From: Pavona decussata
Lineage: Eukaryota
NCBI GenBank assembly: GCA_977016875.1
Contig: CDRNST010000122.1
Location: 372,001-436,000, forward strand
DNA length: 64,000 nt
Direction: 5' to 3'
In this document: positions 5,801-63,904 of the stretch, piece after piece
Numbering within the stretch: the first letter of the stretch is position 1
Layout: each line of letters starts with the position of its first letter
Position numbers and translations under genes: made by a program
The notes under the pieces: generated by a model
The model's database searches: none
Told to the model about the DNA's origin: nothing
Seen by the model: the letters and a program-made list of their open reading frames with translations, nothing else

Positions 5801-8552
5801 AGTACTGCCGCATATGTTTCAACCACTTGCACGGCGTACATGTAATAAACAGCGTGTCTGGAAACTAAGTACTGTGAGTAGCTGTTATGTTTAAATGATT
5901 GTGAAAACGTTTATAAACCTACCCATTTGAAGGGCTGTCCAGTGAATTAGGTATGTCTGTAATAATTATTAACTACTGGTTTAGGTTACACTGTTAGAGA
6001 AACTTGTTTTAGCCGCCGGACTTGTGATGACTTTAGTAATCGTCCATTCGCACAGGATATCGATTGGAAGAATCTGGACAAGCAAGTTAATCGTGCTTTA
6101 CCTAACATGAAAAAGGAATGGGACAAGCTGGCTGAACGTGTTAAACAGGATCCAGAGTGGGTTAGATTCCAGTGGCTGTGGATGGAAACAGGTAATGCTG
6201 GCTCTGAGGCGACCTCGTCGATTCTCTTTATCATTAAATGATCATAACTTTCACTCCCTTTCAGTGAAATTAGCCGTACTTTGTTACAAGGCAAAACAAT
6301 TGTTTCTGCTCTTGAAATTCACGGAGGGAGACGCGGATGCGAACCTTACATGCGCCAGCCGAAGACCGCACGAATTCATAACACCGAACGACTCAAAAAC
6401 TACGGACTGTTTTGCAGTTTTATTACTATTAATATCATGCCGTGTTTAAGTTTATTGCGCAAACTCTGTTACTCTCTATGTAACAGGCCAAATCCTGTAA
6501 AATGGCCAATTATCGTCGTACTTTGTTACCGAAATACAACCACTACTTGTTACTGTTTTATCTGATTAATGTACATTTGATAAATTTGTTTTGTTCTGTT
6601 TTTTGGTTATTTTGTTTGTTTGTTTGTTTCTAGCGTTTGCTGAATTGACGTAAATAGTGTATATTAGTTGTAAGTAGCCATTTTTGGGCTCGCAGACGTC
6701 TTCTAATTCTTGGATGCGCCAAGGTGATGTTACAGGATTTGCAACGACGATTTTCAACACGTTGCGAGTTTTTTAATCAACGTGCGGAGCCAAATCCAAC
6801 GAAAATTACGTAGAAAATTGTCCATGCGCCCTTGTTACAAGGCATCATCTTTCTTTCCCCGACAGTGTTGCGCTGAAAACCGTCGTTGTAAACTTTTAAC
6901 AATATTTTGTAGTTCCTCTTCTTTTTCAATCCAGAATCACCACATCTAATTTTAAGCATCTTTCAAAATTTCTTTCAGAAAAAAGGTTAACAACCACACC
7001 AACAATAGCTGTGCCAACGCAAACACCGACTACCTTAGAAACAGAATTTAATTTCCAAGTGGAGGAAACCGATGGCGGTTTTAAGGCCGAACTGGGTCTT
7101 CGCCCTGGTGATTCGGTTCGTATTCCGCTCGGTGAAGGTTTCCGTGAAGTTCGTATCAAATTCGTCGGCTTACGAGACGGGGAACGGAAGAAGGTAAAAG
7201 GCTGGAAGAAACGTTGGCAGAAGCGACTTTGCCGGGTGCTGTGTGGTCTGTGTGAAGGTGAGGGTTACCTTGATATGACCATGGTCAATAAACGCTTCTT
7301 CAAAATCACAAGGATGGGAGATCGCTTCATCAAGGTCCAAGTTGACGTAGACGAGTCGTTTGTTCGTAGACATCTAGAAGGTCATGAAGTACGCTTCAAA
7401 GTAGAGCTACGAACCCGCGGGTCTAATGTTATGGTTCTCAACTATGGGATCATGCTTCGAAGCAGCAGACACCGGCGCTCCTTTTCTGACAAGTATTTCT
7501 CTATACCCCACGAAGAACTTTTCCCAAGGTACCGTCAACACCAGCATGGCCAGTGTATGACCGGGTCAGGTCCAGTGGCCTGGGCTAAAGTACTTGGTTA
7601 CTATGATAACATGGCTACGGGAAGCTCCAACTCAAGTTATCCGTAAGTTCTTCTTTTTTTCTCTTGATTTACTGTGAGTTCTAAATCCAAATGTGTCGGA
7701 AGTAATGGGTAGCAGTAACCTAAAGAGAGTGTCAAGCAAGAGGATGTTACTCCCTGAAATGTGGTGAACTCGGTAATACGTTACTGACAGGTTATTTTTG
7801 TACTAAATGCAGAAATTTCGGTTACTGATCTGTAAACCGCCGTTGCAACTACTTTATGGTTGTATTAAGCTTTTCTGAAACTTTGAAGTACTTATTTTTT
7901 TAATCCTTCTTTGTATTTTTGAAGGAGCACGTTTAAACTAAACAGAACCCCATGCAATACCAATCCTAAATCATTAGGTTCTGAGTGACCCTAGGAGCAA
8001 TTCGTTAGAAATTTTGAAGTAAAATTACTGACGATTCTTTCTTTTCATTGCAGATCAATAACTCGCCTGACAGGTTTGTCCACTCCTTTGCCACTGACAA
8101 TGGACACCTCAGTGAAAAACATGATACAGCTTATCTTTCATAAGCTTGGATCCCATTGCTCCTCACACGGAGGAGGTGTAACCTCGCCTGCTCAAATGGG
8201 GCGAATCAGAAAAGCCTTCAGGAAAGTCATGGGACGAGAATTTAAGGTCGTTCATCGGGTTGGCCGTAAAAAAGATACAAGCTATTGGACGGATTTAATA
8301 AAGGAACTACTTCGAAAGGGCTACCCTGTCATAATCAGCAAAGAGACTAACACTCCTGGCGAGTACCATTATGTGGTTGTAACAAGAATCAGGCAGAGCG
8401 CTAAATACTACAGTTATTGTAATCGCAAAACCGATGTATGTTCACCATGGACTTTACAGGAAGAATCACTTGTTTTTGTTCACGAGGAAGACAGACCTGG
8501 CAAATGGGAAAGTGCTGACACTGACTTTGTTGCTGCGGTCATTGTTAAATGA
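2875..8552 (+). CDS. Multi-exon gene, 5' end not found: papain-fold (peptidase C10/C39-like) protein with catalytic Cys replaced by Ser; probable pseudo-peptidase
   Basis: Exons with AG/GT boundaries and consistent phases: 2875-3143, 3520-3719, 6056-6191 (acceptor least certain), 6979-7642, 8054-8552 (stop TGA). Motifs: YIAYWEAK..YVIISA..GDHRL (streptopain-propeptide-like), QHQHGQCMTGSGPVAWAKVLGYYD (GC[G/V]xxAxAxxxxYY-type nucleophile helix with S at the C position), KGYPVII and GEYHYVVV (catalytic His strand). The first exon, which needs a phase-2 donor, was not identified. Confidence 0.75.
4207..4478. other. Assembly gap (N run)
   Basis: Run of N inside an intron of the first gene; ORFs spanning it are artefacts. 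Confidence 0.99.
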
Positions 8553-9769
8553 AACAAAATCACATTAGGAAGTCGTGACAATGCTGGGATCGACTTCAAT
8601 AGCCGTAGACTTGTAATTTGCCCACAGACAGTCATCATCTCGCTCTGTCCCTCTGAACAGTTTTCTAGTGGTTATCGTAAACTCAAAGCTAAGAACTAAG
8701 AAGTTGGAACCAAGAACAAATGTTAACAAATGAAGTAAGCCAATCAAATCAAGTCGTGGAGAAAATTAGACAACATTTTCCAAGTGAGGGAAACCGTACG
8801 CTAGCCATGCTCTGATTGAGCTTGGTCTTGCTCCCGATTGTTTGAAATTACAACATAAAGACAGCATGCTTGATCAAGTGGTTGACCAAAGCACAGACAG
8901 GACTACTTCTGACAGCCAGACGAAAACTGCTTCTGCTCGATTTTTCACCGTGATAAATTGTCGAACTGCAGATTACAGGAAGAACATGCGAAGAAATTAT
9001 TAATCGCGTATTCTTGAACCAGAGCCACTGGAGCAACTGTATATATTGTAGTTAAAAGAAACTATATATGGTTTTACTTAAGCGCAAGTGATATTCTTTA
9101 TACGTTAAGTTATTTCTCTCTCCGCCTCAAAGTTAATCGTTGGTCTGTGTTCTTTCATTGTAGTATTTTTAACCCTTGATTAGCATCAAATTTCTCCTTG
9201 AAATATCAATACTTATTCAACCTCTGAGGTTATGAGAATTAAGGATATAAGCACCCAGTACTTTTACAAGAAAAGTATGGGGACAAGAAAGGCAAATTTG
9301 TTCTTTGATATGAAGAATTGACGATACATAAACGAGTATTCTTTTCATAGTACATTGTTTTAGAGAAAATGAGTGCCCCTCCCCCACCCACCCAAGACAT
9401 AAGTCTTCTCTTATTTCCCAGTATGTTTTACGTGTATAAAATATTTCATTATAAGTTGTTATTGGGTCCGTTATATTGTCGAATTATGCGGACTGGCATT
9501 GCCAAATATTTTGTCTTTGCTTTTTATATATGTAAAAACAAAACAAAATGTATTTTAGGTTTGCTCTATGAACATGCAGCTGCAGACCTTTCAGTCCTCA
9601 TAATGTCCTCAAGTAGAGGTAACTTCGATGTGAAGAAATAAAACTGATAAAACCATAAGACAATTCCTGGTCACTCCAGATACTTTGCTGAAATACAGTC
9701 ACTTTGGGTTTATATTACTGGTGCTACTATTATCAGCACCATGTTCCACATTTCTTCAAACAAGCCACC

Positions 9770-10990: not shown

Positions 10991-13934
10991 TTGCAGATGA
11001 TTTTGGGTGCATGGAGGTGAGCTGATGGACGTGACTTGCTTGAGCTTTTACCCTTAAGAACTGTTCAACATCTCAACTTCTAGCTAGAAAATATGCTCTC
11101 TTGGTAACGATTCCATGTTCATCTTTGCTAGAAAGAAGTCTCCAGTAAAATACACACTGGTAATGTGTCATGATGTTGAATGTTGCCACCAGTAAAGAGT
11201 GAAGAGCAACTTGCACGAAAACAAATTATCTGACCTAAATAATTGATAAATTTACACCCTTCGGCGCCTTAATTTATAAGAACCGGCACGTTCTTCAGCA
11301 CTTAAAAACTGCGATATGACGGCTGCCTTTGTTTTTTATTCTAATTTTTTTTTCGTTGTCCTTTTGATCGAACTTATATCGTTATGCGGATGTTGTTGAG
11401 CCAACCGCAATGAGATTTCCACTTTCTAATCCTCTCCGCCTCTAAATAAACATATCTTTTTCTCCTTGCGATCATCTCCAGAATTTTGTAATCCGGCGAT
11501 TCGTTATTGGATTAGGAAGTTTCGAGACAGGAAACTTCCTTCGGGAGTATTTTTTTCGACCGCCGTTTTTCAACACTAGGCTTTGAGGGTCCTCTTAAAT
11601 AGCTGTTAACTTGACCTTCTTCAGACCGTTTTACTTCAGCGAATTTAGAGACTGAAAATATGGTTACAATTAAAGTGTCAATTGTGAAAATTTAATACAA
11701 GAACCCAATTTCAATTTTCAAATTTTTTAACCTTTTTTATTTTGCCGACGTATGGTATCCTTGTGATACAGCCGACGAAAAAGAAGGCTGCTTTGTTTTC
11801 GTGACTATAAGACGTCTCAACATGCCGCCAAATCTACGGTTTCTGCAATACAAAGCTTTAGGAGCTTTAGTACTCCACCCCTTTGATGGGATGCAAGTCC
11901 GTTGCAGGCCATATCATGTAGTCTGAGACAGGAAGATTTCCGAAGCGCCCCATACTCGCGTGAACAAACCTTCCGTTCTCTTCCCTGAGCAAGACACGGC
12001 TTTGAATCGCCTCTCTGTACCCACTTGTTCAAACCAGGGGTAAGCTAACTAGAGTTCATGCAGATTCTCTGTGTTTTAAATTTTGACTTGGCATATTTCA
12101 AACTGTAAATTGAAACTAATGAAATTATTTCCTTTTTGGTGAAAGAAGTTAGCTTTCTTTTGGCTACTGCAATATGGATGTACAAGTACCAACCTATATA
12201 TGTCGTTGTCCGACCTCGTTTCAAAGGTCAGACACAAAGAAAAGAGAGCCTGGAAAAACCGTTCGTTTTCCACATTCCGAGTGCGAAGACATCTTCGTTG
12301 CTAGGCAGTAAGAAATTACATATTTTGATGTTGCTAGGGAGGAACCCTGCCGAATCTACGTTTTCTACAATACAAAGCTCTAGGAGCATTTGTACTTCAC
12401 CCTTTTGATGGGATGCAAGTCCGTTGCAGGCCATATCATGTGGTCTGAGACAGGAAAGAGTATGCAAGCTTTGTGCCCCACTCTCTCATGAACACACCTT
12501 GACTTCGCATATTTCATACTGTAAATTAAAACTGACGGTCGACACATTATTTACTTTTTAACTGAACGAAAGAAACTAACTTTCAGGTTTATGAATGAAA
12601 CTAGTACGCGGAAACTATTCACACGGTTACCGCAATATGGTACCAACCAAAAACTGCCGTTGTCCAACCTCGTTTCAAAGGTCGGACGCGAGGAAAAGAG
12701 AGCTTGGGAATACCGTTTTCCACGTGCCGAGTGCGAAGACGTACATCGTTGCTAGGCAATAAGAAATTACATATTTTGATGTTGCCAGGAAGGAGCCCTG
12801 AAACTTGTTCAAAGACCGGCTTGGATGTTTGCCTGAGAATATTGGACATCCGTGCGATTTGAAGCTTACATAAAAATGAGTGCCGGTTGATGATTGACAT
12901 TTCACAGCTCCGTGTAAAATAAGCATGAGCAATGACTGTTTCATCTAACCTTTCCTTTTTTTTAAACATCGATGCTCTTTTTGCAGATGATATTGGGAGC
13001 ATGGAGTTCAGCTAATTGACATGACTTGCCTTACCTTTCATTCTTTAATACTCGTCAACGTTTAGACTGAAAAAATACTTTTTGTGTTGGAGTGATGCCA
13101 TGTTCACTTTGCTAAAAAAAAGCCCCTAGCGAAATACACACTGGTAATGTGTCATGGTCGTCATGATGTTGAATGTTGCCACCAGTAAGGAGTGAAGGGC
13201 AACTTGCACGAAAACAAATTATCTGACCTAAATAATTGATGAATTTACACCCTTCGCGCCTTATGATTAGAGATACGCACTGTTTAGCGCTTTTTGGGTA
13301 AACTTGTTATCTGAGTTGGCTCGTTCTTCAGCCGTGAAACCTTGAAGACTGCAGTATGAAGGATGTCATAGTGATATTGCTGTTGCTATTCATCCCAGTG
13401 GCTTCAACCAGTAAGTGTTTTATATTTGCGGTATATTTCCGTTCTCTTTTTGATCGAATTGATGTTGTTATGCGGGCGTTGTCGAGTTAGCTGCAATGAG
13501 ATTACCACTTCTTAATCCGTCATTCTGGTCTCCAAAATCTTGTAATCCGGCAAAAGGTATTCTGTAGACTCTTGAAGCCTGCTAGCAGTTTGTGAGGCCT
13601 AGAACTTTCTTCAGCAGTCAAAGGTTGACTTTTAAATTCTCCTTTTAGAACGTCCCTTACAAGCAAACAGCTGCGTTTCAGACCTAAGCAAGAATTGGGT
13701 CTCCCTCGATATCTCTTTAACTGATATTTTGTGGCCGTTTTATTTAATCCAATTTCAAGACCCTGGAAATATTGTGACAAGTTGGGGCTCAGTTCGTCGA
13801 CTGTGTTAAAAGTGTAAATTTAATGTTGCAACCCAAATTTTCAAACTTTTTTCCCTTGCCGACATATTTTGCTCCCTGTGAAACAGACGAAAAAGAAGGC
13901 TGCAATAGCATGCTTTGTTTCCTGAACAAGACGG
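10991..13934 (+). repeat. Diverged tandem duplication (~2 kb period) of the promoter/exon-1 region of the Tae4-Hint gene, with nested smaller duplications
   Basis: 10991-11817 aligns by eye with 12981-13934, e.g. the shared gcaacttgcacgaaaacaaattatctgacctaaataattgat. Also 11823-11990 ~ 12348-12500 and 12165-12348 ~ 12625-12800. Confidence 0.8.
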
Positions 13935-16900
13935 CACGCACGGTGATGGCCTCGCATTAAACAGCGTCTGCAAGCACGCCAACGATATGAAACAGAAATT
14001 TTGAAGGTCAAAATTTGAGGTCAAAATTTTGAATTTTGGCCATTTTCCACGTAATTGGCAGCAAATTCAGCGGACAGTTACCCGTCTCTTGTTGGAATTC
14101 TCAGCCATGAGTAAGGAATTGCCTTATTTCTAACCCTTTCAGAAAATTTGAGAAGATTACTCTACGCATGCAGATGTTGGCGAATGTAAACCACCGAGAC
14201 CGTAATAAAATAACACCATGTTCAATTTCGGAAACATATATTTTGAGCTATAACGGTAATCAATTTTGCATGAGGAGATATATGGTAAGGCAGCTGGATT
14301 TAACTATCCACCAAAAACAATAGTGTATCTATGAACGGACTATCTTATGGTGTTTGCCCGCGAAAATTTGCTGTATGTTCAGTTAAAACAATATTAGCCC
14401 GAGGAAGGCAAGCTTCACTAAGAACATCAAATTTCCAAGGGAAAATATCAGACCGATAGACCCGAGAATTTGAAATCAACCTTTTCGTTAGTGAATTGAA
14501 AAAAAAAAAAAAAACAGTTTTGTGGACATGTTCTCTCCAAAAATACTGAGCCAATAGTGTATCTCCGTTGAGTGGATGAACACGTGATTAATTTTGACCA
14601 ATGAGAATCGGAGAACATTTAGCGGCGAAATGTAACATCAAAGCTACAAGGCAGTAGTGGGACTGTGGGTACGATAGGGCGAGTGAGTTTGAGAGGAAAA
14701 AAAAAGTGGCTCAACATATGGCAAGGTAGAGCTTATTTGTGAAACATTTTGCTTCAAAACTTACTTGTAGTTTTGTTTTGAACTGACAGGCGCGATTTTA
14801 AGTTGAGTCAAATGCAAAACGTCCGCGTGCCAAATGTACCAAATTCTCACAATCTATACCATCTTTAGACCCAAAAGTGACATACAACGAGTGGGGCGCG
14901 CACGGTAGGTTATTTGCAAATGAGAGGTCAAACCAAGAATGCAATACAAGAGAGAAAAAGTATAGTTCTCAGCAGGATTAGCTTCAAAAGATTGTCTTCA
15001 AGAATTCTTGATTAAAAGAAGATTCCTGTTCGGATGGTGATCCTATAGTTAAAATGGTATACCTGCGGGCTTTTTGTTAGTATGTAGAATTTTTCTGTGT
15101 CTAGTCATTAAAGTTGAGGGCAAAAAACAGGACAATTTTCAAATTAACCACTGTTTCCACTTTTTTTTTTTTTTCAGAGATGCTGCCTTTGTTTCCAAAC
15201 CTTAAAATGTTTTACCCCGGATATGCAAGTTATGGTGGAATGTTCAGCGACCCGCGCCTCATCAAAGAGCTCCACCTCTCCTACCACGCCAGCATAAACA
15301 GCGACACATGCATACTGCGCATGAGCACAGCACTAAATCATAACAGAGGCCACGAAGTGAGAGAATCTTACAACGGAAGCGCAAAAGGCTTTAAAGGCTT
15401 GTATTACTTCTATGAGCGAAAAGCGTTTCTGGATTACCTTAAAGAGGTGTATGGACGACCGCTCACCTCGAACACCACCGAAACTTTCAAATCTCAAGTA
15501 GGAATAATGTTTATTGATGCCACTGTCAGCAAGAACTCAAGCGATGTTTGCAAAGTCTTGCTCTGGAATGGCATGGGCTTTCATCAGGCACGAGGTTTTG
15601 TTCAAGACATTCAGTCTGTGAAAAAGTTTGAGTTATGGCCTACCACAACAGGTATAGTGGAATGTTAGAGTTACCCGTAAAATTGCAGTGAAACTCAAAG
15701 CGGACCCAACCAGTGTAAGGCCCAGAGCTCGCGTTTTCCTTGACCAAGTCGCCGTGGGTAGTTACGTGTGATTTTTTCTGGTCAGGCTGGCCCAGTTGAT
15801 ACAGATGTGTAAAATAATCTGCACTAGGTGCTTTGTTTACCTCTCTTGTCTGTCTTTGTCCGTCCCCGTGCAATGTTGAGGCCCTCAAAAGTGAGGCTTA
15901 GGGGACGTGTAATGATCTCAATGTCAACGATAAAGATTGTTGTTTTGTCGTGAGCCACCTTAAAAGGGCTCATTATCATTAAAGATCAATCGGTTTCCCT
16001 AAATTTTTCTTTGTTTTCTAATTTCCACAACTCGACTACATTTGTCAACCTTCCCTATAAGTATAAGTAAAATCACCAAAATATTTTACAGTGAAACGTT
16101 TGGTTTCTCCTCCATTTAGATGATTGTAAAGTCAATTTAAATATAAAGCAGTCCACCTGTTTTCCATCCAAGTCTAAAGTTGAGTTGAAATCTGGGAAGA
16201 AAATTCCCATGAGTGAGGTCGGCATTGGCGACTTAGTCAAAACATACTCTAAGAAGGGTGAGGTCATGTTCAGTCCCGTGGTTACATTCCTGGATCAAAT
16301 GCCTGATTACAAAGGTTAGTAACGAATTCTTCCACGATTTGCCTTTCATCGANNNNNNNNNNNNNNNNNNNNNNNNNNNNNNNNNNNNNNNNNNNNNNNN
16401 NNNNNNNNNNNNNNNNNNNNNNNNNNNNNNNNNNNNNNNNNNNNNNNNNNNNNNNNNNNNNNNNNNNNNNNNNNNNNNNNNNNNNNNNNNNNNNNNNNNN
16501 NNNNNNNNNNNNNNNNNNNNNNNNNNNNNNNNNNNNNNNNNNNNNNNNNNNNNNNNNNNNNNNNNNNNNNNNNNNNNNNNNNNNNNNNNNNNNNNNNNNN
16601 NNNNNNNNNNNNNNNNNNNNNNNNNNNNNNNNNNNNNNNNNCATTCCCTCCTTGATTGTCTTCCCTTCCCCCTCTCTCGCTTTATTCTTATGATTTCATC
16701 ATCTAACGTGTGCCCTTTCCCTTCCTACCTTCCCTCCAATAAACATATCATTGAAAGCAACCTTTATGAGAACCAACTTTATTTTTGCCTTCAGGTCACT
16801 ATTACACGATTACTACTGCGTGCAACTTTCAAATATCCCTAAGCGAAGCTCATCTTATTTTCAAGACAATTCCAATGCCCCATTTCACTAACTGCTCCGC

Positions 16901-17309
16901 CCATGCGTCTCAAGTCAGACCCGGTGACTTCATTCTGGTCCATACTCGGCGAGGACGCTATCCTGAATTGGTGACATCAGTCTCAATAGCTGAGATGCAG
17001 GGAGCCTTTGCACCTGTCACCGAAGAAGGTACCATGATAGTGGATGATGTTTGGGTGTCGTGTTATGCTGACATCGCGGATCATGATTTAGCTGATACAC
17101 TGATGACACCTTTGAAGAGGTTCTATGGCCTGGCCCCTCATGTGCTGGGGACCGGGGGCAAGTACCTGCATGGGTACATGAAAGGAGCCCTCCGACCCAT
17201 CGGTGTGAGGATCTTTGGCAAAGAGAAGTTTTATCAAAGTCCACAAAGGGAGGTTTTGAGGGAAGAAGAAACGTCCATTGAATCATTTTTCAAGAAGGAT
17301 AACAAGTGA
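13356..17309 (+). CDS. Secreted Tae4-like (T6SS amidase effector family 4, NlpC/P60-type) domain fused to a Hedgehog-type Hint + sterol-recognition region; 412 aa precursor
   Basis: Exons 13356-13410 (MKDVIVILLLLFIPVAST, signal peptide, donor gtaagt), 15178-15651, 16120-16314 and 16795-17309. All introns are GT-AG, phase 1; total 1239 nt = 412 aa + stop. Exon 2 has Tae4-like motifs LPLFPNLKMFYP, SDTCILRMSTALN, YLKEVYGRP, GIMFI, VLLWNG, FELWP. Exons 3-4 have Hint motifs T|CFPSKSKVELKSG..GDLV, TFLD, LSEAHLIF, GAFAPVTEEGTMIVDDVWVSCYA and an SRR-like tail HDLADTLMTPLKRFY..LHGY. Confidence 0.9.
16353..16641. other. Assembly gap (N run) in intron 3 of the Tae4-Hint gene
   Basis: Run of N. Flanking exons join in phase and the Hint sequence is continuous across the junction, so no missing exon is needed. 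Confidence 0.99.
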
Positions 17310-19305
17310 TTGTTATAGGTAGATTGCATTCGAAGCACTAGCCAAAGTTCGATTGTATAGTTAAAAAGAACACACCTTGAAGCTCATGGCATTATTAAAA
17401 ACAATCAGAAGGTCATAACCAAGTGTTATCAAAGTTTGGTCACACGTGCCAGCTGCAGGGAACTAAATGCCATAATTTTAGTTGACGCTATTTATTTTGT
17501 AAGAAGCTAACTTGTCATTTTACGTTGTTCGTTTTGACGATGGTTTAATCGTGACACTAAATGAAAAGCAAAGGGAACTTTGGAATCAGGTTTTTAGGGT
17601 GTCGCGTTGAGGGACAGAGCCTTGTGATAAAGCTTATTTTCACGATATCTCTTTGTATTAAGTGGTCAGTGTTCCCTGAATACGGGCCTAACTGTTGTAT
17701 AGAAGTAACCATGAAGTCTGACGTAGAGAATTACCAAACATAACGATGTTTTCGCAAGCACAACGTTAGTGCAAATCAATAGTCATTGTAACAGCGTACT
17801 GATCTAACGGTCACCTGTCAAAGCAGAGATTCAGCGCGGTCATGTTTCGACCCTGGTGCAGCCTTCAGACCTTGAAACGAACATATTGTTTGGCCTGCAA
17901 CAGGGTAAAAGCTGTGCCACACACTCTGCAAAGCTGAAAACACATCTCATCTGTCACTCCTGCGGAGTTTCGTAAACAAGACACTGCCTTATTTGTCTCG
18001 CTTCTCACAGTTTGCTTGAAACGGGGTTAAGCTAAATGATTGGGATTCAGGTTCATACAGTTTAACGATGTAGTTCATGTAAATTGTTTTTGACAAGTAC
18101 ATTTTGCCCTTTGTACAAACTGTAATTAGCAGTCGAACCTTTGTTAACTGGTTTTTAACAAGAGAAATAGAGAAGGAGAAGGGACCGATATTCACGGACA
18201 GCCTAAAGAACTGCTTACTTACTTACCATCAAAGGTCATGCAGAAGAGCAAAATTATCCTAGTGCTCAGTATTGCAGAAACCGCAGCTCAACTTAAGCAG
18301 TTTTTCGGTGGTGGTAATTTTTACTTGCAGTCTCCCTTGTTATGCATTTGTATAATTTTATTGTGTTTTGATGTCAAATGCCCCTAGCATGTAAAAAAAT
18401 GGCGGATCTTCTCACGGACTGCGAGGTCTGTTCTCGGAAGTTTTAATAACAATTTTTTTAATTAGCTGAAATAAGCCATTGGTTGATTATATGAGCAGCT
18501 ATTACTTACTATATATTAATAATATTAATGTTATCCTGGAACACGTCATGTTTTTTAAGCCGGATAACTTCGGTGTTCGTTTAAGACGACATCGGCATCG
18601 CAGCTTACAGTTGAAACTGAACTGTTGATAACATTGCGTCACTGAAGTCATAAACAATGAGCAGATTTTATTGACGTTTTCAGCGCAGTTGTTAACATTA
18701 AAGATTTGAAGAGAAAGTCTATACAGTAAACTTACTGCAACTAAGTCTGCATTCTTTCAAAGTTTTCTTTTGTGTGTGTGTGTGCAGTGCATCCCCTTTT
18801 TGAACACTTAGAGGGATTCGCGCCACACTACAATCAACTAATCGTTGGATACAAGGAAATGTAAAAAAATCTGAAGTTGTACTTATACCGGTATTTACAT
18901 AGAGTCTAAGCTTGAGATAGTTCCATGAATTGCTTTTACTTTAGGTTTTATTTGATTAAAAGTTCTTGTTAGCTGTCTGCTCGAAAATCATTTATTGACG
19001 TTTGGGAGTAAAATCTTTTAAGTGGCTTTATTGTATTTTGTATATAGTGTTTAATACGAATGGTTCCTTAAAATATCGCTGCATTTAAAAAATTCGCTCA
19101 ATGTTATACTGTATTCCTACACGGTCTCGCTGAAACAACCCCTGGTAAACAAACCGCGAAGTCAACAATATCTAACTTTTTACACGCAAAAAAATAACTC
19201 ATTTTGGACTAATTCTCCTCTTGTCAATTCTTAATCAACGCGACCTAATTTTTTATACAATAAAGAATTGAAAAATTGTCAAATACTTGTGCATTGTTCG
19301 TGGCT

Positions 19306-23400: not shown

Positions 23401-24710
23401 AAACTTTTTGTTCAACTTTTATTTGTTTGTAAAAGATGGAACGAGGAAAATAGCGAGTGTTGTGCATTCCCGGGTCGTTACTTTAATACACTTAAAAATA
23501 TAATTAAAATTTGCCCTATTACGATATCTGGTTTCCGAAATACTTAAAGTTCTCGAGGTTGCAAAGTTTGCGTAAACTTTCTCAACATTTGCATTTTCTG
23601 ACATTTCGCGATATTCACTGGATGCTTCACTAGTCACGCTATAAAACTAAACATTAGAAAATACGTACCTCGCTGCCGTCTTCGCTTTCTTCTAATTCAA
23701 CAGGAACTAGAGGAAGAGTTTGTCCTGTTAGCTTGTTCGGTGGTAGTTCTTTGAGAGAATACTCCACTTCTCCAATTAGAGTCTTAGTTTGTTCATCAAA
23801 TAACTGAAAGTGTAACACACTTGCATGGAGTTTCCCTGAGATGATGTTATGCACCTCCAGTTTTTCATTGAACTGCGGATCGTTTGATTTGCTCGCCGGT
23901 CGAGTCTTCTGTTCCCATGTTTGACTTCCTTCAAAAGTTAACGATACCACCACTAAAACTTCAGGCGAAATATTAGCTTCGGGACTCGCGATTTTGATCC
24001 CGCGGGTGACATAAATCTGAAGCAAGCGAAATGATTGATCATAATAAAGGGAAAACTCTAATTTGCCCAGATCACTGTCGGGTTTTTTCTTGTGAACTGC
24101 CACTTTCCTATGCTGCATAGCAGGCGATGCTTGAGCTGTAATGACGCCGTTTTTCTTCTTCGGGGGCGAATTTTTGCGCGGTGTTTGTGGCGATTTAGAG
24201 ACTAGCTGTGGCGAAGTCATGGAGCCAGTGTTGATGGCATCGAGTTTAATGCCCCCTCTCTCTTCTGCCTTTCTGCGCACATCAACGCTATGAACGGTTG
24301 GTGATAGGTGAATTCGCCCATTACGGTACTGTTCCTTCTTAATACTATCCACTCGTTCTATAACTCCGATAGGCTGCTGGAGTTGGACGGGCACGGCGTG
24401 CGGAATATAAAACGAAGGAATGTCTTGCTTAACTATCGCACGAGAACGAAACGTCGGATCGGTAGTCAGTTGAGAATATTTATATTTTTCACCCAAGGAT
24501 CGCTGACGGAGGTACTGCACCAGGAGATAGACTGCCACAACGACGATTCCTGTAACCAGACCCAGTCCAACAGCCAAGACAACTAAAAATAAAATAACGG
24601 AGTTCAAAACAGTTAAAGGGCAGCTACGATCTATTGTAAATATTGTCACTTGAGATTTCATATCATGATGAGATGAAGGAATTAAGATTTTTGTTACCTT
24701 GATTAACCAT
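20414..24710 (-). CDS. Synaptotagmin-like protein (N-terminal TM, linker, C2A, C2B), likely Ca2+-independent; 458 aa
   Basis: Exons 24710-24698 (MVNQ), 24582-23669, 21634-21502, 20730-20414; GT-AG, in phase, 1377 nt. TM VVLAVGLGLVTGIVVVAVYLLV; C2A LGKLEFSLYYDQ..DPQFNE; C2B LGELLISLCHNP..NPFVKLDV..PTFSEVFVF; C-terminal WHSI (WHxL-like). The canonical Ca-binding aspartates are not evident. Confidence 0.9.
21195..21336. mobile_element. Palindromic MITE in an intron
   Basis: catcttcggagatccatgggcagataattgggacgg ... ccgtcccgactatctgcccctgggtctccgaagatg inverted arms; related fragment near 56250-56290. Confidence 0.7.
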
Positions 24711-25653
24711 TTAGGACGCTTCAATCGCAACGAGAAAACCAGAATCGCACACATTTACATCCCCCTGCATGGCTTATCAAAGCAGAATTATTTTTCCCCT
24801 ATTCCGGCTATGAAAGGTTTCGAAACAATGTCGTCACATTTTCTTTTTCGGCAATATTGGAGTGTCCGCATGGCAAGTGTTGGGGTACAAATAGAGTTCC
24901 TTTCCCGTTTTATCATGTTCCTTGGCATGGTTGTCATGACTTCCGGTGAAGGCAACCAATAAAATGGCTTAAAAGACCGTCAATATCATTGGTCACGCAA
25001 GCGGTCACCGGAAGTAACGTTTCTAATGCAAATTAATATCAACCCCGACCACTGAATTAATGAACATGAATGAAATATATTGAGAACCTTTCTGAAGTGT
25101 TTCAGCTTCATCAGTGATATCGTAATGTGAAAAGCCGGCAACCTTAAAGTTAACTTTACATTTAGCTTAGAAATATTGGCTGACGCACACCAATTAATAA
25201 CCCAATCATCGACAAAATTAAAAATCCCTTCGAAAGCCAAGAGTGTTTATGAACTAACAGTTCGCCTTTTATAATTAATTCTTACTATTTTGACAAGTCT
25301 TACTTTCTATTCCTAATATAGCAGTTTCATTGTCCCAACATTCGTAAAGCGGATATTTCGACAATTTTGTGGTCAAGTTCGGCTTGAGGTCTGATGAACC
25401 GCTTTGGAGTTTCTTCCGAGCTCAAGTTGTTTGCCACGCAAAGCTATACTTTCCACTTCTCTCGTGACAACAACGCACAATTTTCCTTTTGCACTGGTTG
25501 GTTGACTACATCAGTGTTTGGTTTGCCTATCCAGCTTGCTCCCCGTGTTGACAACGGGGGGTGGGGGAGGAGGTGGTGTTCGGCCCCAATGGTTATGACG
25601 TACAGTGTTTCGTCTTTGAGATCTAAGAACGGGTATCAATTTAAATATAACTA

Positions 25654-57620: not shown

Positions 57621-58639
57621 TTAGAAGGATAGCGGGTTAACCCTCTTGATAATTTTTTCCAGTCTGTTCGCCCGGAGTTCAGACAATGGCATAAAAACCT
57701 CTCCAATCACATACACATTGTCCTGAACATGATCAAAATCCAATACCACAAAATGAACTGTGCATTCGCGGAGTTTGTTATGGACAAAACCGGGCACAAT
57801 AAAAGTTTCGTTGAAGGCAGGATTTGTGGTACGAGAAATCTTTCTCGTCCACTGCCACGACAGCATTTCTGGCAAAATACGCATCTTCACGCTACAATTT
57901 GGCGGGCGAAGGAAGCTCTCGTCCGGCGTGGAAATCGCGACAACTTGAATTACAGTAATGTGTAACTCGCGGCTTGCCGTGTCATAGAAACAAGAGAACT
58001 CAAGCCTACACTCCTCTTCAGTCCCTGAACTTTTCTTTCTGAAGAAATCTTCCGCACTTGCGTTTACCAACCCATCTGACTTTAAAGTGGTGGGCAAGCT
58101 CATTCGCTTACCAAGTTTGGGTTTTTCCTTGCCTATGGTCCCGTTTCTGGCGAGCGGCTCCAGCGCTTTTCCGTCTTCCTGTTCCTCGCCGTCTTCCTCG
58201 ATGGTAGTAAAGGTGCCGACTTCGTACGGCTTCGTTATTCGAATACGTTGTTGTTCACCGGCGTCTAACTCGGTTATTTCGGGATAGGATTCGGCGGAGG
58301 ACTTTGCCAATGTATAAACATTCGGCTGAACCTGGACAGGTCGAGTTTGAGACAGAAGAAACCCTTCGGGGCTTGTAGAGTAATAGTCAATTTTCGCGCG
58401 CGCATCACTCCTGGACTGTGTATCATACGACTTTGAACGTCTGGCATAGCAAAAATATGCGAAACAAACTACAATTGCTCCAGCCAGAAAACCAAGGACT
58501 GACCCAAGAATAACACCGAGAATACTCGAGTCCTGGAAAATAATCAAGAATGCATTCGGATTAGTTTAAAAATTTCTTCACAAGATTCAAAACGCGAAAG
58601 TTTAAAGGGCTTTATAAGTGAATCAGCGCTTACCGTCAT
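57621..58639 (-). CDS. Synaptotagmin-like protein with N-terminal TM and a single C2 domain; ~305 aa
   Basis: Micro-exon 58639-58634 (ATG ACG, donor gtaagc) spliced to 58532-57621. TM ILGVILGSVLGFLAGAIVVCFAYFCY; C2 RLEFSCFYDTASRELHITVIQ..TRKISRTTNPAFNETF..FVVLDFD..IGEVFMPL; the stop follows the C2 domain. Confidence 0.85.
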
Positions 58640-60926: not shown

Positions 60927-63904
60927 TCATCCAGCAATCCCGTCATCCTTAACGCCGGGTGGCTGAAGTGCGCAAGTCCGTTTTAGCTTGTCACGTGACT
61001 TGAGTTCTGCAAGAGGTACTTCCAGTTGTCCAATGTCTCTCTCTTGTTGTCCATTGCAAACAACAATGAATCGAAGTGTGGCTTGCTCTAAATCCACTGG
61101 CTTCACACCAGAGATGATAAAATGATCTTTGAAAACCAGCTGCTTGTCAGAAATGTTAACGGTTTTGGTCCGTCGCCATGTTTTGAACATTGGGAACAAA
61201 CAAAACTTTACATAAATACTGTGTAATGGTGTGATTAGTTCCTCTGACACACCTTCAAGATCCAGAACACTGACGTAAAGCAACGGTGTTGAATTATCAG
61301 CCCTTTTGTATAAAACTGAAAATTTCAGATTTCTCACTAAAGTTTCACTGCTATTCGTAACGTTTTCTCTGTCGTTACGTTTAGCTGCACTATGACCAGA
61401 AGTTCCTTTTTGTTTTTGTATTCCATCTCGCCTAAGCGCAGTTAACAATGTACTCATCATAGTCGCATCTTTGCCCACTTTTAGAATACGTCCATCGTAT
61501 CCGCTAGGTGTTTGGTGGTGTCCATCAGTCTTGGCTGCACGAGTGTTTTCTCTTGTAACATTTACTCTCTCTCGTACATCAATCTTCCCGCGCTCATTTG
61601 CATGATTCCCAGAAGGATGCGTTGTATGTCCTGTTGAAGAACTGTTCTCCAAATCAATACCAATCTTGGAAGTATCTGTGCATTTCAAAGAGTTTGCATA
61701 ACGGTCCTGTTTAATTGCCGGTTTTGAAATTCTCGTTCTGTGAATTGCTTTGTTTGTGTGTCTACGTAAATTAGACCTTGAATCGTTTCTTTTATTGTCC
61801 GAGGATGTACAGCCAGGGAAACTTTCACCATCAGAGTCCAGGGCAAAACTTAACGTGACGCTAGATGTGCCTGTGATGCTTTCGTCAAGCGATGCAAAGC
61901 AGCTAGCGCCTCTAGTTTCGTCTAAGTCCCAATGAGTATCATTCGCTTGTTTCACTTGTTTGATGTATCCGCGATTAGTGTGCAGTTTGTTTGGAATTTC
62001 TGGTGCAAAACTGCTTGCGCCCCTCATGTAATGACCCATAGGTTGCTGTGTTGTTGAATACCCAAACGAACTTGCTCCTCGAATATTCTTTTCACCGCTG
62101 TCCTCTCCCCGAATGTCCCTCTGTCCAGATCTACAATAAGTGATTCCTTTTTTTGTTGAATCTTTCACTTCGCCAAACGAGCTGGCTCCGCGTAATTCTT
62201 TCACCCCTGAGTTTATTTCTTCCAGAAGAAGTTCCGGGGATTTTTGCGCGCGCATTTCTCTTCCTCCATCCTTTTGCCTAGGTTTCGTTGTCGACTCATC
62301 AAAATTCCTTGTTTTCTGACAATGAAACTTACAAGATGGACCATGAATACACAAGCAACTCGATGCGTGAACTTGATTTAAACAACTCAGTCTGCCACCT
62401 CTCGCAATACGTTCAGTTATAGTTGGATTATATCGGTACTCACTTTCCAGCATGTCAGAGCTCCCTTCGACATCAGTATTTTCCCCGATTGAATCTGTAG
62501 GCGCCATTAATTGACCAGAAGTTGTCTCAGTTTGAAAATGCGCGTTACATTTCCCTGCGCATAGGCACAGTGAACTTGGTGCTTGCACGGTTTTCAGGCA
62601 ACTCGCACGGCCGCCGCGGTGGACGGGAGATTTAGTCTGCGTTAATTGCAAATCATCCTCTGAAATAAGTTCTAACCTTTTTAATAGTTGCAAACTTTCT
62701 TGCAGTGGGGCACGTATTCTTCTGTTTCCAGAAACAAGCTCTACTGTTTCTTTATGACGTTCTTCTGTTTCTACATCTAATGCCCCAAGCAACGTGTGGG
62801 TGTAGTCTTCATCTCTTGTCTTACGGGACACCTCTACATCATTCAGCCATTTCTCCAAATCCTCACGTCGTAATGGACTTTGACCCCTGTCATGCATGTT
62901 CTTTTCATTCAGCGGACCTGTTACATCAGCTGATGGGGTATCAAACCTTAAAATGTCTGGGTTTATGTTTTGAGCAATATCACCCCAAGTGAGTCGTTCG
63001 TTAGTTATTCGGGTTCCATCATCTGACGCTTCTATTTCACCAGCTTTTGTGCCATGCGTAGAGAAGTCACAAGCGTTCACGCACAAGCAACTAGGCGCAC
63101 ATTCAAGCTGCAATACGCTTAAACGCCCCCCAGGGTACACCCCACGGTCGATTTTGGGGACATACGAAGGGAAACCGTTTCCATTTAACTCAGAAAATGC
63201 ACCTTCATCGAGTGGCTGTGAACCATTTTCGCTTAAGGGAAATTCTTCTAAACTATCGTTTTCAAAATCATCTGGAGAATTTGTACCAATTCCACTTGAC
63301 GCAGATGAAATTCTGCAGTTGCCATTTCCTTCACCTGCTGAATTTATCTCATGTAGCGTAATAGAGATTTTCTTGTTCTCAGCTGCGCCATTTTCCATTA
63401 TTGCGTCGCTTTCTCTGTCTCTATATGAAGGAATATCGTATTCTGACGTGTTCTCGTTTCTTGTTGAATGAATGGGACTTGTGCCTTTTTCCATCACTTC
63501 TGGTCTGCAAACATTCACTGCGCATGTCTCCCCATGCAGTCCCACGATGTTGCCAACTAGCTCGCTGACCGGTTGGCACTGCGGTAGGTCTTGATATTCG
63601 CTTCTCACTGCATCCACAACGTCATTGTTTTCTTGTTGAAGAACTGAAAATGGCTCCTTAGCAATCCTCTCTGGTACGTTATGAAAGCGTATTGTCCGGC
63701 GACCATACTGTTGTTCAAATTTTTTTTTGAACTTGTTATCTGGCATTGCTTTAGGTTTGCACAGCGTCGTTCCGCTCGTAATCAGCAAGCCACCAAACAT
63801 GAGCATAAGCAGGGCGCCAATGGCGGGAAAAAGAAATGGCGTGATGTCGGTTGGGTCGTCCTGTGGGATGACGTCACTTTCTTCAGGAGTTTGATCTGCA
63901 AGAT
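60927..63904 (-). CDS. Large synaptotagmin-like TM-linker-C2 protein, terminal exon (5' exons beyond the window)
   Basis: The open frame extends upstream of the listed ATG to an acceptor (attattttcccag, exon start 63904). TM FLFPAIGALLMLMFGGLLITSG, ~800-aa low-complexity linker with internal repeats, C-terminal C2 LKFSVLY..LYVSVLD..YVKFCLFP..RRTKT..LVFKDHF..IGQLEVPL. Confidence 0.85.

Follow-up and report, generated by a model that had tools for sequence, protein, structure and literature searches.

In a 64,000-nucleotide stretch of the genome of the coral Pavona decussata (assembly GCA_977016875.1, contig CDRNST010000122.1, positions 372,001 to 436,000 of the forward strand; hereafter the window, with positions counted from its first letter), we identify a four-exon gene at 13356–17309 on the forward strand whose predicted product joins a bacterial-type toxin domain to the autoprocessing module of Hedgehog proteins. 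The locus is a genuine, expressed animal gene. Its second exon is a Tae4 domain with ancestry in bacterial type VI secretion system (T6SS) amidases, and its third and fourth exons are, judging from their sequence, a Hedgehog-type Hint domain and adduct recognition region (ARR), together a Hog module, with the residues for autoprocessing retained. Tae4 amidases cut the D-iGlu-mDAP (D-isoglutamate to meso-diaminopimelic acid) bond of peptidoglycan; the Tae4-like domain of the coral protein is most likely not a canonical amidase, and on balance we favour the reading that the precursor would release a non-catalytic binding module of Tae4 fold, tethered by a sterol and most likely at work where host and microbes meet.

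The gene model rests on sequence and transcripts alike. Exon 1 (13356–13410) starts with ATG and holds 18 codons and the first base of codon 19, encoding an 18-residue signal peptide recognized by inspection only, in which the hydrophobic core VIVILLLLFIPVA is followed by AST; orthologues have the same kind of start. Exon 2 (15178–15651; 157 codons, precursor residues 20–176) encodes the whole Tae4-fold domain and three N-glycosylation sequons (NGS, NTT and NSS), exon 3 (16120–16314) a linker with a third conserved cysteine, the cleavage site and Hint positions 1–52, and exon 4 (16795–17309) the rest of Hint and a tail like an ARR or sterol recognition region (SRR), closed by the stop codon TGA; the 3′ untranslated region (UTR) begins at 17310–17364. 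The three introns (13411–15177, 15652–16119 and 16315–16794) all run from GT to AG, and the exons, all in one phase, give a coding length of 1239 nucleotides or 412 codons. Four in-phase exons had been proposed in an earlier note made from the letters of this stretch alone, and spliced contigs now confirm them: when contigs of four public runs were aligned to 13300–17400, the joints 13410>15178, 15651>16120 and 16314>16795 were all carried exactly by transcript contigs from three studies (runs X5, X6 and X10; the last two joints read from alignments given as 15649>16118 and 16312>16793 with a cut of +2), with exon 2 spliced to exon 3 in X6 and X10, and a single 1807-nucleotide contig (run X6) covered all four exons in order. 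We take these contigs to be processed transcripts because they are spliced, the run type being presumed to be RNA. A coral metatranscriptome (run X19) contained an unspliced relative at 90–95% identity.

The assembly carries a run of N from 16353 to 16641, within intron 3. In the spliced contig, exon 3 is followed directly by exon 4 (record positions 712 and 713) with no letters between them, the Hint profile is contiguous across the two exons, and orthologues have zero extra residues at this joint; together these observations indicate a continuous frame and a gap that conceals no exon. Spliceosomal introns, a GC content like that of the surroundings and neighbouring eukaryotic genes with C2 domains identify the locus as animal DNA. 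The window gene was searched exon by exon, and full-length comparisons were made with database orthologues (P0029 and others).

Two further features of the transcribed region stand apart from the coding sequence. Some 40 bases of intron 1 (14421–14459) are covered at high depth by many unrelated contigs of four runs, with loose ends on both sides, and are probably a fragment of an expressed repeat. In the 3′ UTR, contigs of runs X5, X6 and X10 skip the 327 bases from 17365 to 17691 and resume at 17692; the skipped piece lacks GT..AG ends and has TTGTATAG on both sides. It looks less like an intron than like an insertion or deletion by which the sequenced colonies and the reference differ.

The assignment of exon 2 to Tae4, suggested in the earlier note from motifs, holds at the level of profile, fold and language-model features. 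The exon matches the Pfam family PF14113 (Tae4) at 32.1 bits (cut-off 27; E = 1.4e-7) over profile positions 2–125 of 125, a match also recovered by a search of the genome, and among PDB sequences it retrieves the Tae4 entries 4JUR, 4HFF and 4J30 (E = 0.013). An AlphaFold2 model of the exon, built from a 30-row alignment, has a mean predicted local distance difference test (pLDDT) score of 92.2; compared with the PDB by Foldseek, it returns Tae4 structures at all of ranks 1–11, from Salmonella, Enterobacter, Agrobacterium and Serratia, with probability 1.00 and template modelling (TM) scores of 0.59–0.75, and the next match has E = 1. Features from the ESM Atlas score 0.96, with 23 of 30 matches in Tae4 clusters. 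All of the motifs listed in that note are present (LPLFPNLKMFYPG, DTCILRMSTALN, YLKEVYGRP, GIMF, LWNG, ELW and, at the cleavage site, ST|CFP), and DTCILRMS of the coral protein aligns with NACPIRMS of 4JUR and 4HFF, which holds the nucleophile cysteine. The E values for Tae4 and for Hint (5.7e-13 and 6.6e-23, below) exclude a chance match. Searches with the exon-2 protein and with PF14113 found no other Tae4 locus in the coral genome, and the Hedge domain (HH_signal in Pfam) gave no match to exon 2 at E ≤ 1.

Downstream of this domain, the Hint family PF01079 matches exon 3 at profile positions 8–62 (E = 5.7e-13) and exon 4 at positions 66–179 (E = 6.6e-23). The alignment to Drosophila Hedgehog C-terminal domain (1AT0) begins at its Cys1, which corresponds to Cys190 of the ST|CFP motif; FLDQ in exon 3 aligns with FMDR of 1AT0, placing Asp46, SEAH falls on Hint positions 69–72 (Ser69 and His72) by direct count from Cys1, and VSCYA in exon 4 aligns with ASCYA of human SHH and fly Hedgehog (Cys143 in Hint numbering). 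Beyond SCYA the protein continues for about 75 residues; aligned with human SHH, it can be followed some 25 residues into the SRR of the latter, and a YLHGY..LRPIG motif in this C-terminal tail is conserved in orthologues. The claim of a Hog fusion with intact autoprocessing residues is thus upheld at the level of sequence, and the predicted N-terminal product of residues 19–189, ending at Thr189 before Cys190 (codons at 16155–16160, in exon 3), stands as a prediction. The coral genome contains at least 10 Hint loci.

We find the same fusion in other stony corals and in sea anemones, and a family present in both is at least as old as the split between them. An exhaustive phmmer search with exon 2 returned 28 proteins, one of which (P0002, 407 residues) contains both Tae4 and Hint, and cluster look-ups and word searches from database orthologues yielded full-length orthologues of 397–415 residues with the same layout (P0029, P0067, P0075–P0078 and P0082). 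Many of the shorter matches are prokaryote-style gene calls of exon 2 that run on into the intron. The orthologue of Montipora capricornis is annotated as ‘uncharacterized protein’, that of Acropora millepora in NCBI as ‘desert hedgehog protein-like’ and that of Oculina patagonica as ‘tiggy-winkle hedgehog protein-like’; the two hedgehog names are misnomers. In loci from two close relatives (L005 and L006), Hint exons lie downstream of exon 2 in the same order. The fusion also occurs in Nematostella vectensis (Nv 120428), in the sea anemone Actinostola sp. (locus L003 of GCA_033675265.1, an assembly identified through PMC10803348), where the Tae4-like domain is spread over several exons, and in a metagenomic contig (L004, sample SAMN04849739; 3012–3350 and 4221–4970), where the Hint module lies in one exon and has histidine at Hint position 46. 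The window protein is 49% identical to P0078 in the Tae4-like domain, and P0078 aligns over its full length with other orthologues. One candidate homologue, the 6310-residue P0005 with 23 matched stretches, was rejected as a spurious match to a C..WNG..Q repeat.

Some of these relatives show peculiarities of their own. The Actinostola orthologue contains, at 7707–8609 and 6101–6995 of its locus, a 100-base unit repeated nine times at 97% identity, with an array of 14 copies of a 64-base unit in the preceding intron; the 100-base unit combines a splice acceptor with a portion of one Tae4-like exon (..GRKGIMLMNITESNHAPCSAL..), its last copy continuing into the real exon. These repeats may be a real amplification of an exon fragment or an effect of assembly. 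In L005, exon 4 has an in-frame stop (FY*SPQ, near position 6250) 24 codons ahead of where the ARR tail normally ends; the allele may be truncated, the sequence may be in error, or the tail may be dispensable.

The residues of the Tae4 active site tell a divided story. The nucleophile cysteine, Cys63 of the precursor by alignment (exon-2 residue 44, codon at 15309–15311), is invariant in all fused orthologues, and the scaffold motifs LR(M/L)S and LW(N/D)G are kept in them. The catalytic histidine of bacterial GHVTLWNG, by contrast, aligns with lysine in CKVLLWNG of the window protein, an alignment made secure by the conserved LWNG anchor directly after it, and none of the aligned runs has a read variant at the Cys-Lys codons (15549–15554), which occupy the position of Gly-His in Tae4. 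At the histidine position the close relatives P0088 and P0090 share the window's Cys-Lys; P0001 has aspartate, the Acropora, Oculina and Actinostola proteins together with P0029, P0067, P0075 and P0076 have serine, Montipora has asparagine, P0008 arginine and Nematostella glycine (CGAVLWDG). Only the metagenomic L004 has histidine there (SCHALLWDG), as the sole fused relative in which the Tae4 cysteine and histidine occur together. The cysteine just before this position is invariant in the fused clade and has no counterpart in bacterial Tae4. A further histidine, in the motif GFHQ, is near-invariant in other orthologues and is also missing from Nematostella, which has FFQ.

The nearest unfused relatives, animal homologues of Tae4 that come from molluscs where named (Dreissena and Sepia), present the reciprocal pattern to the fused coral clade, keeping Gly-His and carrying serine, threonine or alanine at the nucleophile position (P0007, P0014, P0017, P0018, P0022–P0024 and P0099). 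A third group of relatives, delimited by motif and not by origin, mostly lacks both catalytic residues. A C-terminal cysteine after the last tryptophan is common to the mollusc-type and fused coral clades. In a maximum-likelihood tree, whose assumed root lies on rows with canonical Cys/His motifs that were labelled by motif and not by origin, the fused sequences from corals cluster together with support 94/98 and adjoin the mollusc type with weak support (82/70).

The two halves of the protein also differ in tempo. When the window gene is compared with those of two close species, protein identity is 70–80% in the Tae4-like exon and 93–95% in the Hint exons. The pairwise ratio of nonsynonymous to synonymous substitution rates (dN/dS), calculated from few substitutions, is 1.62 in the Tae4-like domain and 0.23 in Hint and ARR for the window and L005, 0.72 and 0.10 for the window and L006, and 0.83 and 0.14 for L005 and L006, the two exon-2 values for L006 being taken from a MAFFT alignment. 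The difference between the domains is significant for the window and L005 (Fisher p = 5.5e-4), dN in the Tae4-like domain is about five times that in the Hog module, and for close species the dN/dS of the Tae4-like domain does not depart significantly from 1 (p = 0.25). Since the catalytic histidine is replaced by variable residues and dN runs about five times faster than in the Hog module, the domain is most likely not a canonical amidase. At the same time, about 25 invariant core positions, an open frame and the fold have been kept from Nematostella and Actinostola to Acropora. Our reading is that the scaffold has been retained, that its surface evolves fast and that the canonical catalytic dyad is gone; Cys63 might then be disulfide-bonded to the nearby conserved Cys143 of the precursor or to the linker cysteine.

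These features suggest how the product might be made and held in place. The gene encodes a 412-residue precursor, predicted to be secreted, that is composed of a signal peptide, one Tae4-fold domain, a short cysteine-bearing linker and the Hog module (Hint and ARR). In the secretory pathway, after removal of the signal peptide, Cys190 would attack the carbonyl of Thr189 to form a thioester, which a sterol hydroxyl activated by Asp46 would then resolve. The product released in this way (residues 19–189, about 19 kDa) would be glycosylated, the three N-x-S/T sequons fitting a secretory glycoprotein, and esterified with a sterol that would hold it on membranes; without an N-terminal cysteine, palmitoylation in the style of Hedgehog would not be expected. 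As to its task, our best guess is that it recognizes fragments of peptidoglycan, or some other ligand, on the surface of the epithelium. We infer processing and the sterol adduct by analogy with established Hedgehog chemistry, and the probable lack of canonical amidase activity from the pattern of residues. The earlier note had envisaged a sterol-tethered module that cuts or binds peptidoglycan: the fusion and the predicted N-terminal product hold good, and the cutting is doubtful, given a histidine that is lost and replaced variably in a domain evolving near neutrality.

Several observations weigh against a non-catalytic, sterol-tethered binding module. Strict conservation of the nucleophile cysteine is left unexplained if catalysis has been lost, and L004 keeps both cysteine and histidine, so that enzymatic activity may persist in some members of the family. 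Threonine, and not the usual glycine, precedes the cleavage cysteine, which may slow processing, and Hint position 46 varies among aspartate, glutamate, histidine and glutamine in orthologues, so that not every member may transfer a sterol. The dN/dS values, for their part, are pairwise and come from the few substitutions noted above.

Of the alternatives, the one that survives best, which we nonetheless regard as unlikely, is an endogenous lipid-modified signalling ligand unrelated to bacteria, with the Tae4 fold reused as a Hedgehog-like paracrine signal, much as Hedge arose from zinc peptidases of the cell wall. Such a ligand would sit well with strong purifying selection on the Hog module, with the lost catalytic residues and with a family present in both anemones and corals, and it would have a precedent in Shh, which resembles bacterial M15A peptidoglycan peptidases (PMC8052667). 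What tells against it is tempo, since the domain changes by 20–30% between close species and Hint by about 5%, whereas ligands paired with a conserved receptor usually change slowly.

Somewhat less probable again is an active, sterol-anchored peptidoglycan amidase that pairs Cys63 with a substitute base, either Lys144 or the GFHQ histidine. The invariant nucleophile, the LR(M/L)S and LW(N/D)G motifs and the intact fold of the predicted model are what an enzyme would keep, L004 retains the Cys-His pair, and nvDae4 of Nematostella is an active enzyme. The candidate bases themselves speak against it, however: lysine, aspartate, serine, asparagine, arginine and glycine all occur at the histidine position, so that no single substitute base is conserved, Nematostella lacks the GFHQ histidine, and dN/dS lies near 1. 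That same ratio could instead be taken to mean that the N-terminal domain is a decaying passenger and that only the Hog module, or the secretion of some sterol-linked peptide, matters; we consider this very improbable in view of the open frame, fold and core positions maintained from anemones to Acropora, the confident AlphaFold2 model and an exon 2 free of stops and frameshifts in every orthologue seen. Lastly, an artefact in which two neighbouring genes, or bacterial contamination, were wrongly joined has only the assembly gap within the span to recommend it and is refuted by single spliced contigs across all exons and by full-length orthologues in other species.

Returning to the non-catalytic binding module, we tentatively put forward a broader scenario, possible but well short of probable, in which hexacorals adopted a horizontally acquired T6SS toxin fold as Hog cargo, giving a sterol-anchored sensor (or a hydrolase where the histidine is kept) of cell-wall fragments at epithelial or symbiosome membranes. 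If this were true, then, with the peptidase ancestry of Hedge in mind, Hog domains may originally have tethered proteins acting on cell walls, and cell-wall enzymes that lose catalysis may repeatedly give rise to Hedgehog-like ligands. Whether Hog modules serve to fix microbe-directed proteins to membranes is testable in Nematostella or in coral cells. After Hedge, the gene would present a second, independent cell-wall-hydrolase fold on Hog chemistry with apparent loss of catalysis. It also joins two literatures, on the transfer of T6SS amidases from bacteria to animals (dae genes) and on the modular evolution of Hedgehog-related proteins. With the present assignment, a cnidarian Hog family acquires a fold and an ancestry, and a systematic misannotation in corals is corrected; because the catalytic histidine is lost, an assay should come before any listing of the protein among antibacterial enzymes.

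Elsewhere in the window, the gene just upstream (7011–8552, forward strand) includes an open reading frame (ORF) at 8076–8552 with a weak match to Peptidase_C10 (streptopain; E = 0.00099, 19.8 bits, below the 26-bit cut-off), and on this weak match it would be another bacterial-type cysteine-peptidase-like gene adjoining the Tae4–Hog gene. On the reverse strand, at 23654–24754, 57621–58547 and 60927–63806, lie two single-exon ORFs, each encoding a transmembrane helix and, at the C-terminus, a C2 domain (Pfam C2, E = 1e-8 and 1.5e-10), and an ORF of 959 residues that has no Pfam match; the three look like a small local family.

To our knowledge, Tae4 had not yet been described in 2008. In that year, Bürglin listed a ‘Y hog’ family, represented by Nv 120428 and Acm DY579185, with a ‘novel’ N-terminus that has three conserved cysteines and no similarity outside Cnidaria (PMC2362128). 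By the orthology of both its N-terminal domain and its Hog module, the window protein is to be placed in this Y hog family of hexacorals, with which it shares the signal peptide, the three-cysteine domain and the Hog module. The sequence of the expressed sequence tag (EST) Acm DY579185 in the supplement of that paper equals P0078 except for one residue, and the Nv 120428 sequence given there contains the motifs YPG..GG, NNTCALRIS and CGAVLWDG, then LL|CFPS. The difference is that the N-terminus can now be assigned to the Tae4 fold, and that molluscs and bacteria have relatives of it. According to the table in PMC2362128, the Joint Genome Institute (JGI) models covered the Hog domain only, which would account for later surveys of predicted proteomes for Tae4 having missed the family. 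The earlier note's view that the architecture had not been described is therefore only half sustained: the family has been listed since 2008, NCBI holds entries for it and the architecture is implicit in the precomputed Pfam annotations of P0002, while in searchable full text (Tae4 or dae4 with Hint, Hog or hedgehog), outside which many subscription papers lie, we found no description of the N-terminus as Tae4 or Dae4 type. A literature search for coral studies under the NCBI hedgehog-like names gave nothing usable. The known Hog family and the known class of domesticated toxins are one and the same.

Domesticated amidase effector (dae) genes were reportedly described by Chou in 2015. As a eukaryote-encoded tae4 homologue with a secretion signal, introns, transcripts and a place in an animal clade of the tree, the window gene fits Dae4 in the sense of a domesticated tae4 gene; it departs from Dae4 as an active antibacterial enzyme in its catalytic residues, the histidine being missing. 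A functional comparison is offered by nvDae4 of Nematostella, reported as an active peptidoglycan amidase with Cys63-dependent bacteriolysis that is induced by cGAMP and NF-kB (Margolis 2021, PMC8713801); that paper reports Tae4 homologues in Nematostella as immune-induced and does not mention a Hog module in nvDae4. Like nvDae4, the window protein is a Tae4 homologue with a eukaryotic signal peptide for secretion, and its gene belongs to the nuclear genome of a cnidarian; what sets it off from nvDae4 as reported is the fusion to Hog and the loss of the catalytic histidine. Either of the two reported Nematostella tae4 homologues, one of them nvDae4 (GeneID 5507694), might be Nv 120428; a nucleophile numbered 63 or 64 is uninformative on this point because it is expected for any signal peptide joined to Tae4. 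With bacterial Tae4 (PDB 4HFF, 4J30, 4JUR, 4HFK, 6IJF and 4BI3, from sources comprising S. Typhimurium, E. cloacae, A. tumefaciens and Serratia Ssp1/2), the window protein shares the fold, the Pfam family and the nucleophile-cysteine motifs; it differs in having no catalytic histidine, no T6SS delivery and no Tai4 immunity partner, and in having introns, a signal peptide, glycosylation sequons and the Hog fusion.

Hedgehog itself offers a further comparison. In Hedgehog as in the window protein, a signal peptide and an N-terminal cargo precede a Hog module that carries Cys1, Asp46, (T/S)xxH and SCYA, and in both the cargo has ancestry in bacterial cell-wall hydrolases. The cargo of the window protein is predicted to be a papain-like Tae4 fold and not the zinc-binding Hedge domain, and it offers no N-terminal cysteine for palmitoylation; as far as its sequence goes, with no Hedge domain, the protein is not a Hedgehog proper. 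Other Hint fusions are on record in corals, AIG1/GiMAP-Hint (PMC3723955) and AnNLL-Hint (PMC7850063), and these likewise place a Hedgehog-type Hint after a non-Hedge, sometimes immune-related domain. Their N-terminal domains are different ones, none reported to be of bacterial toxin origin.

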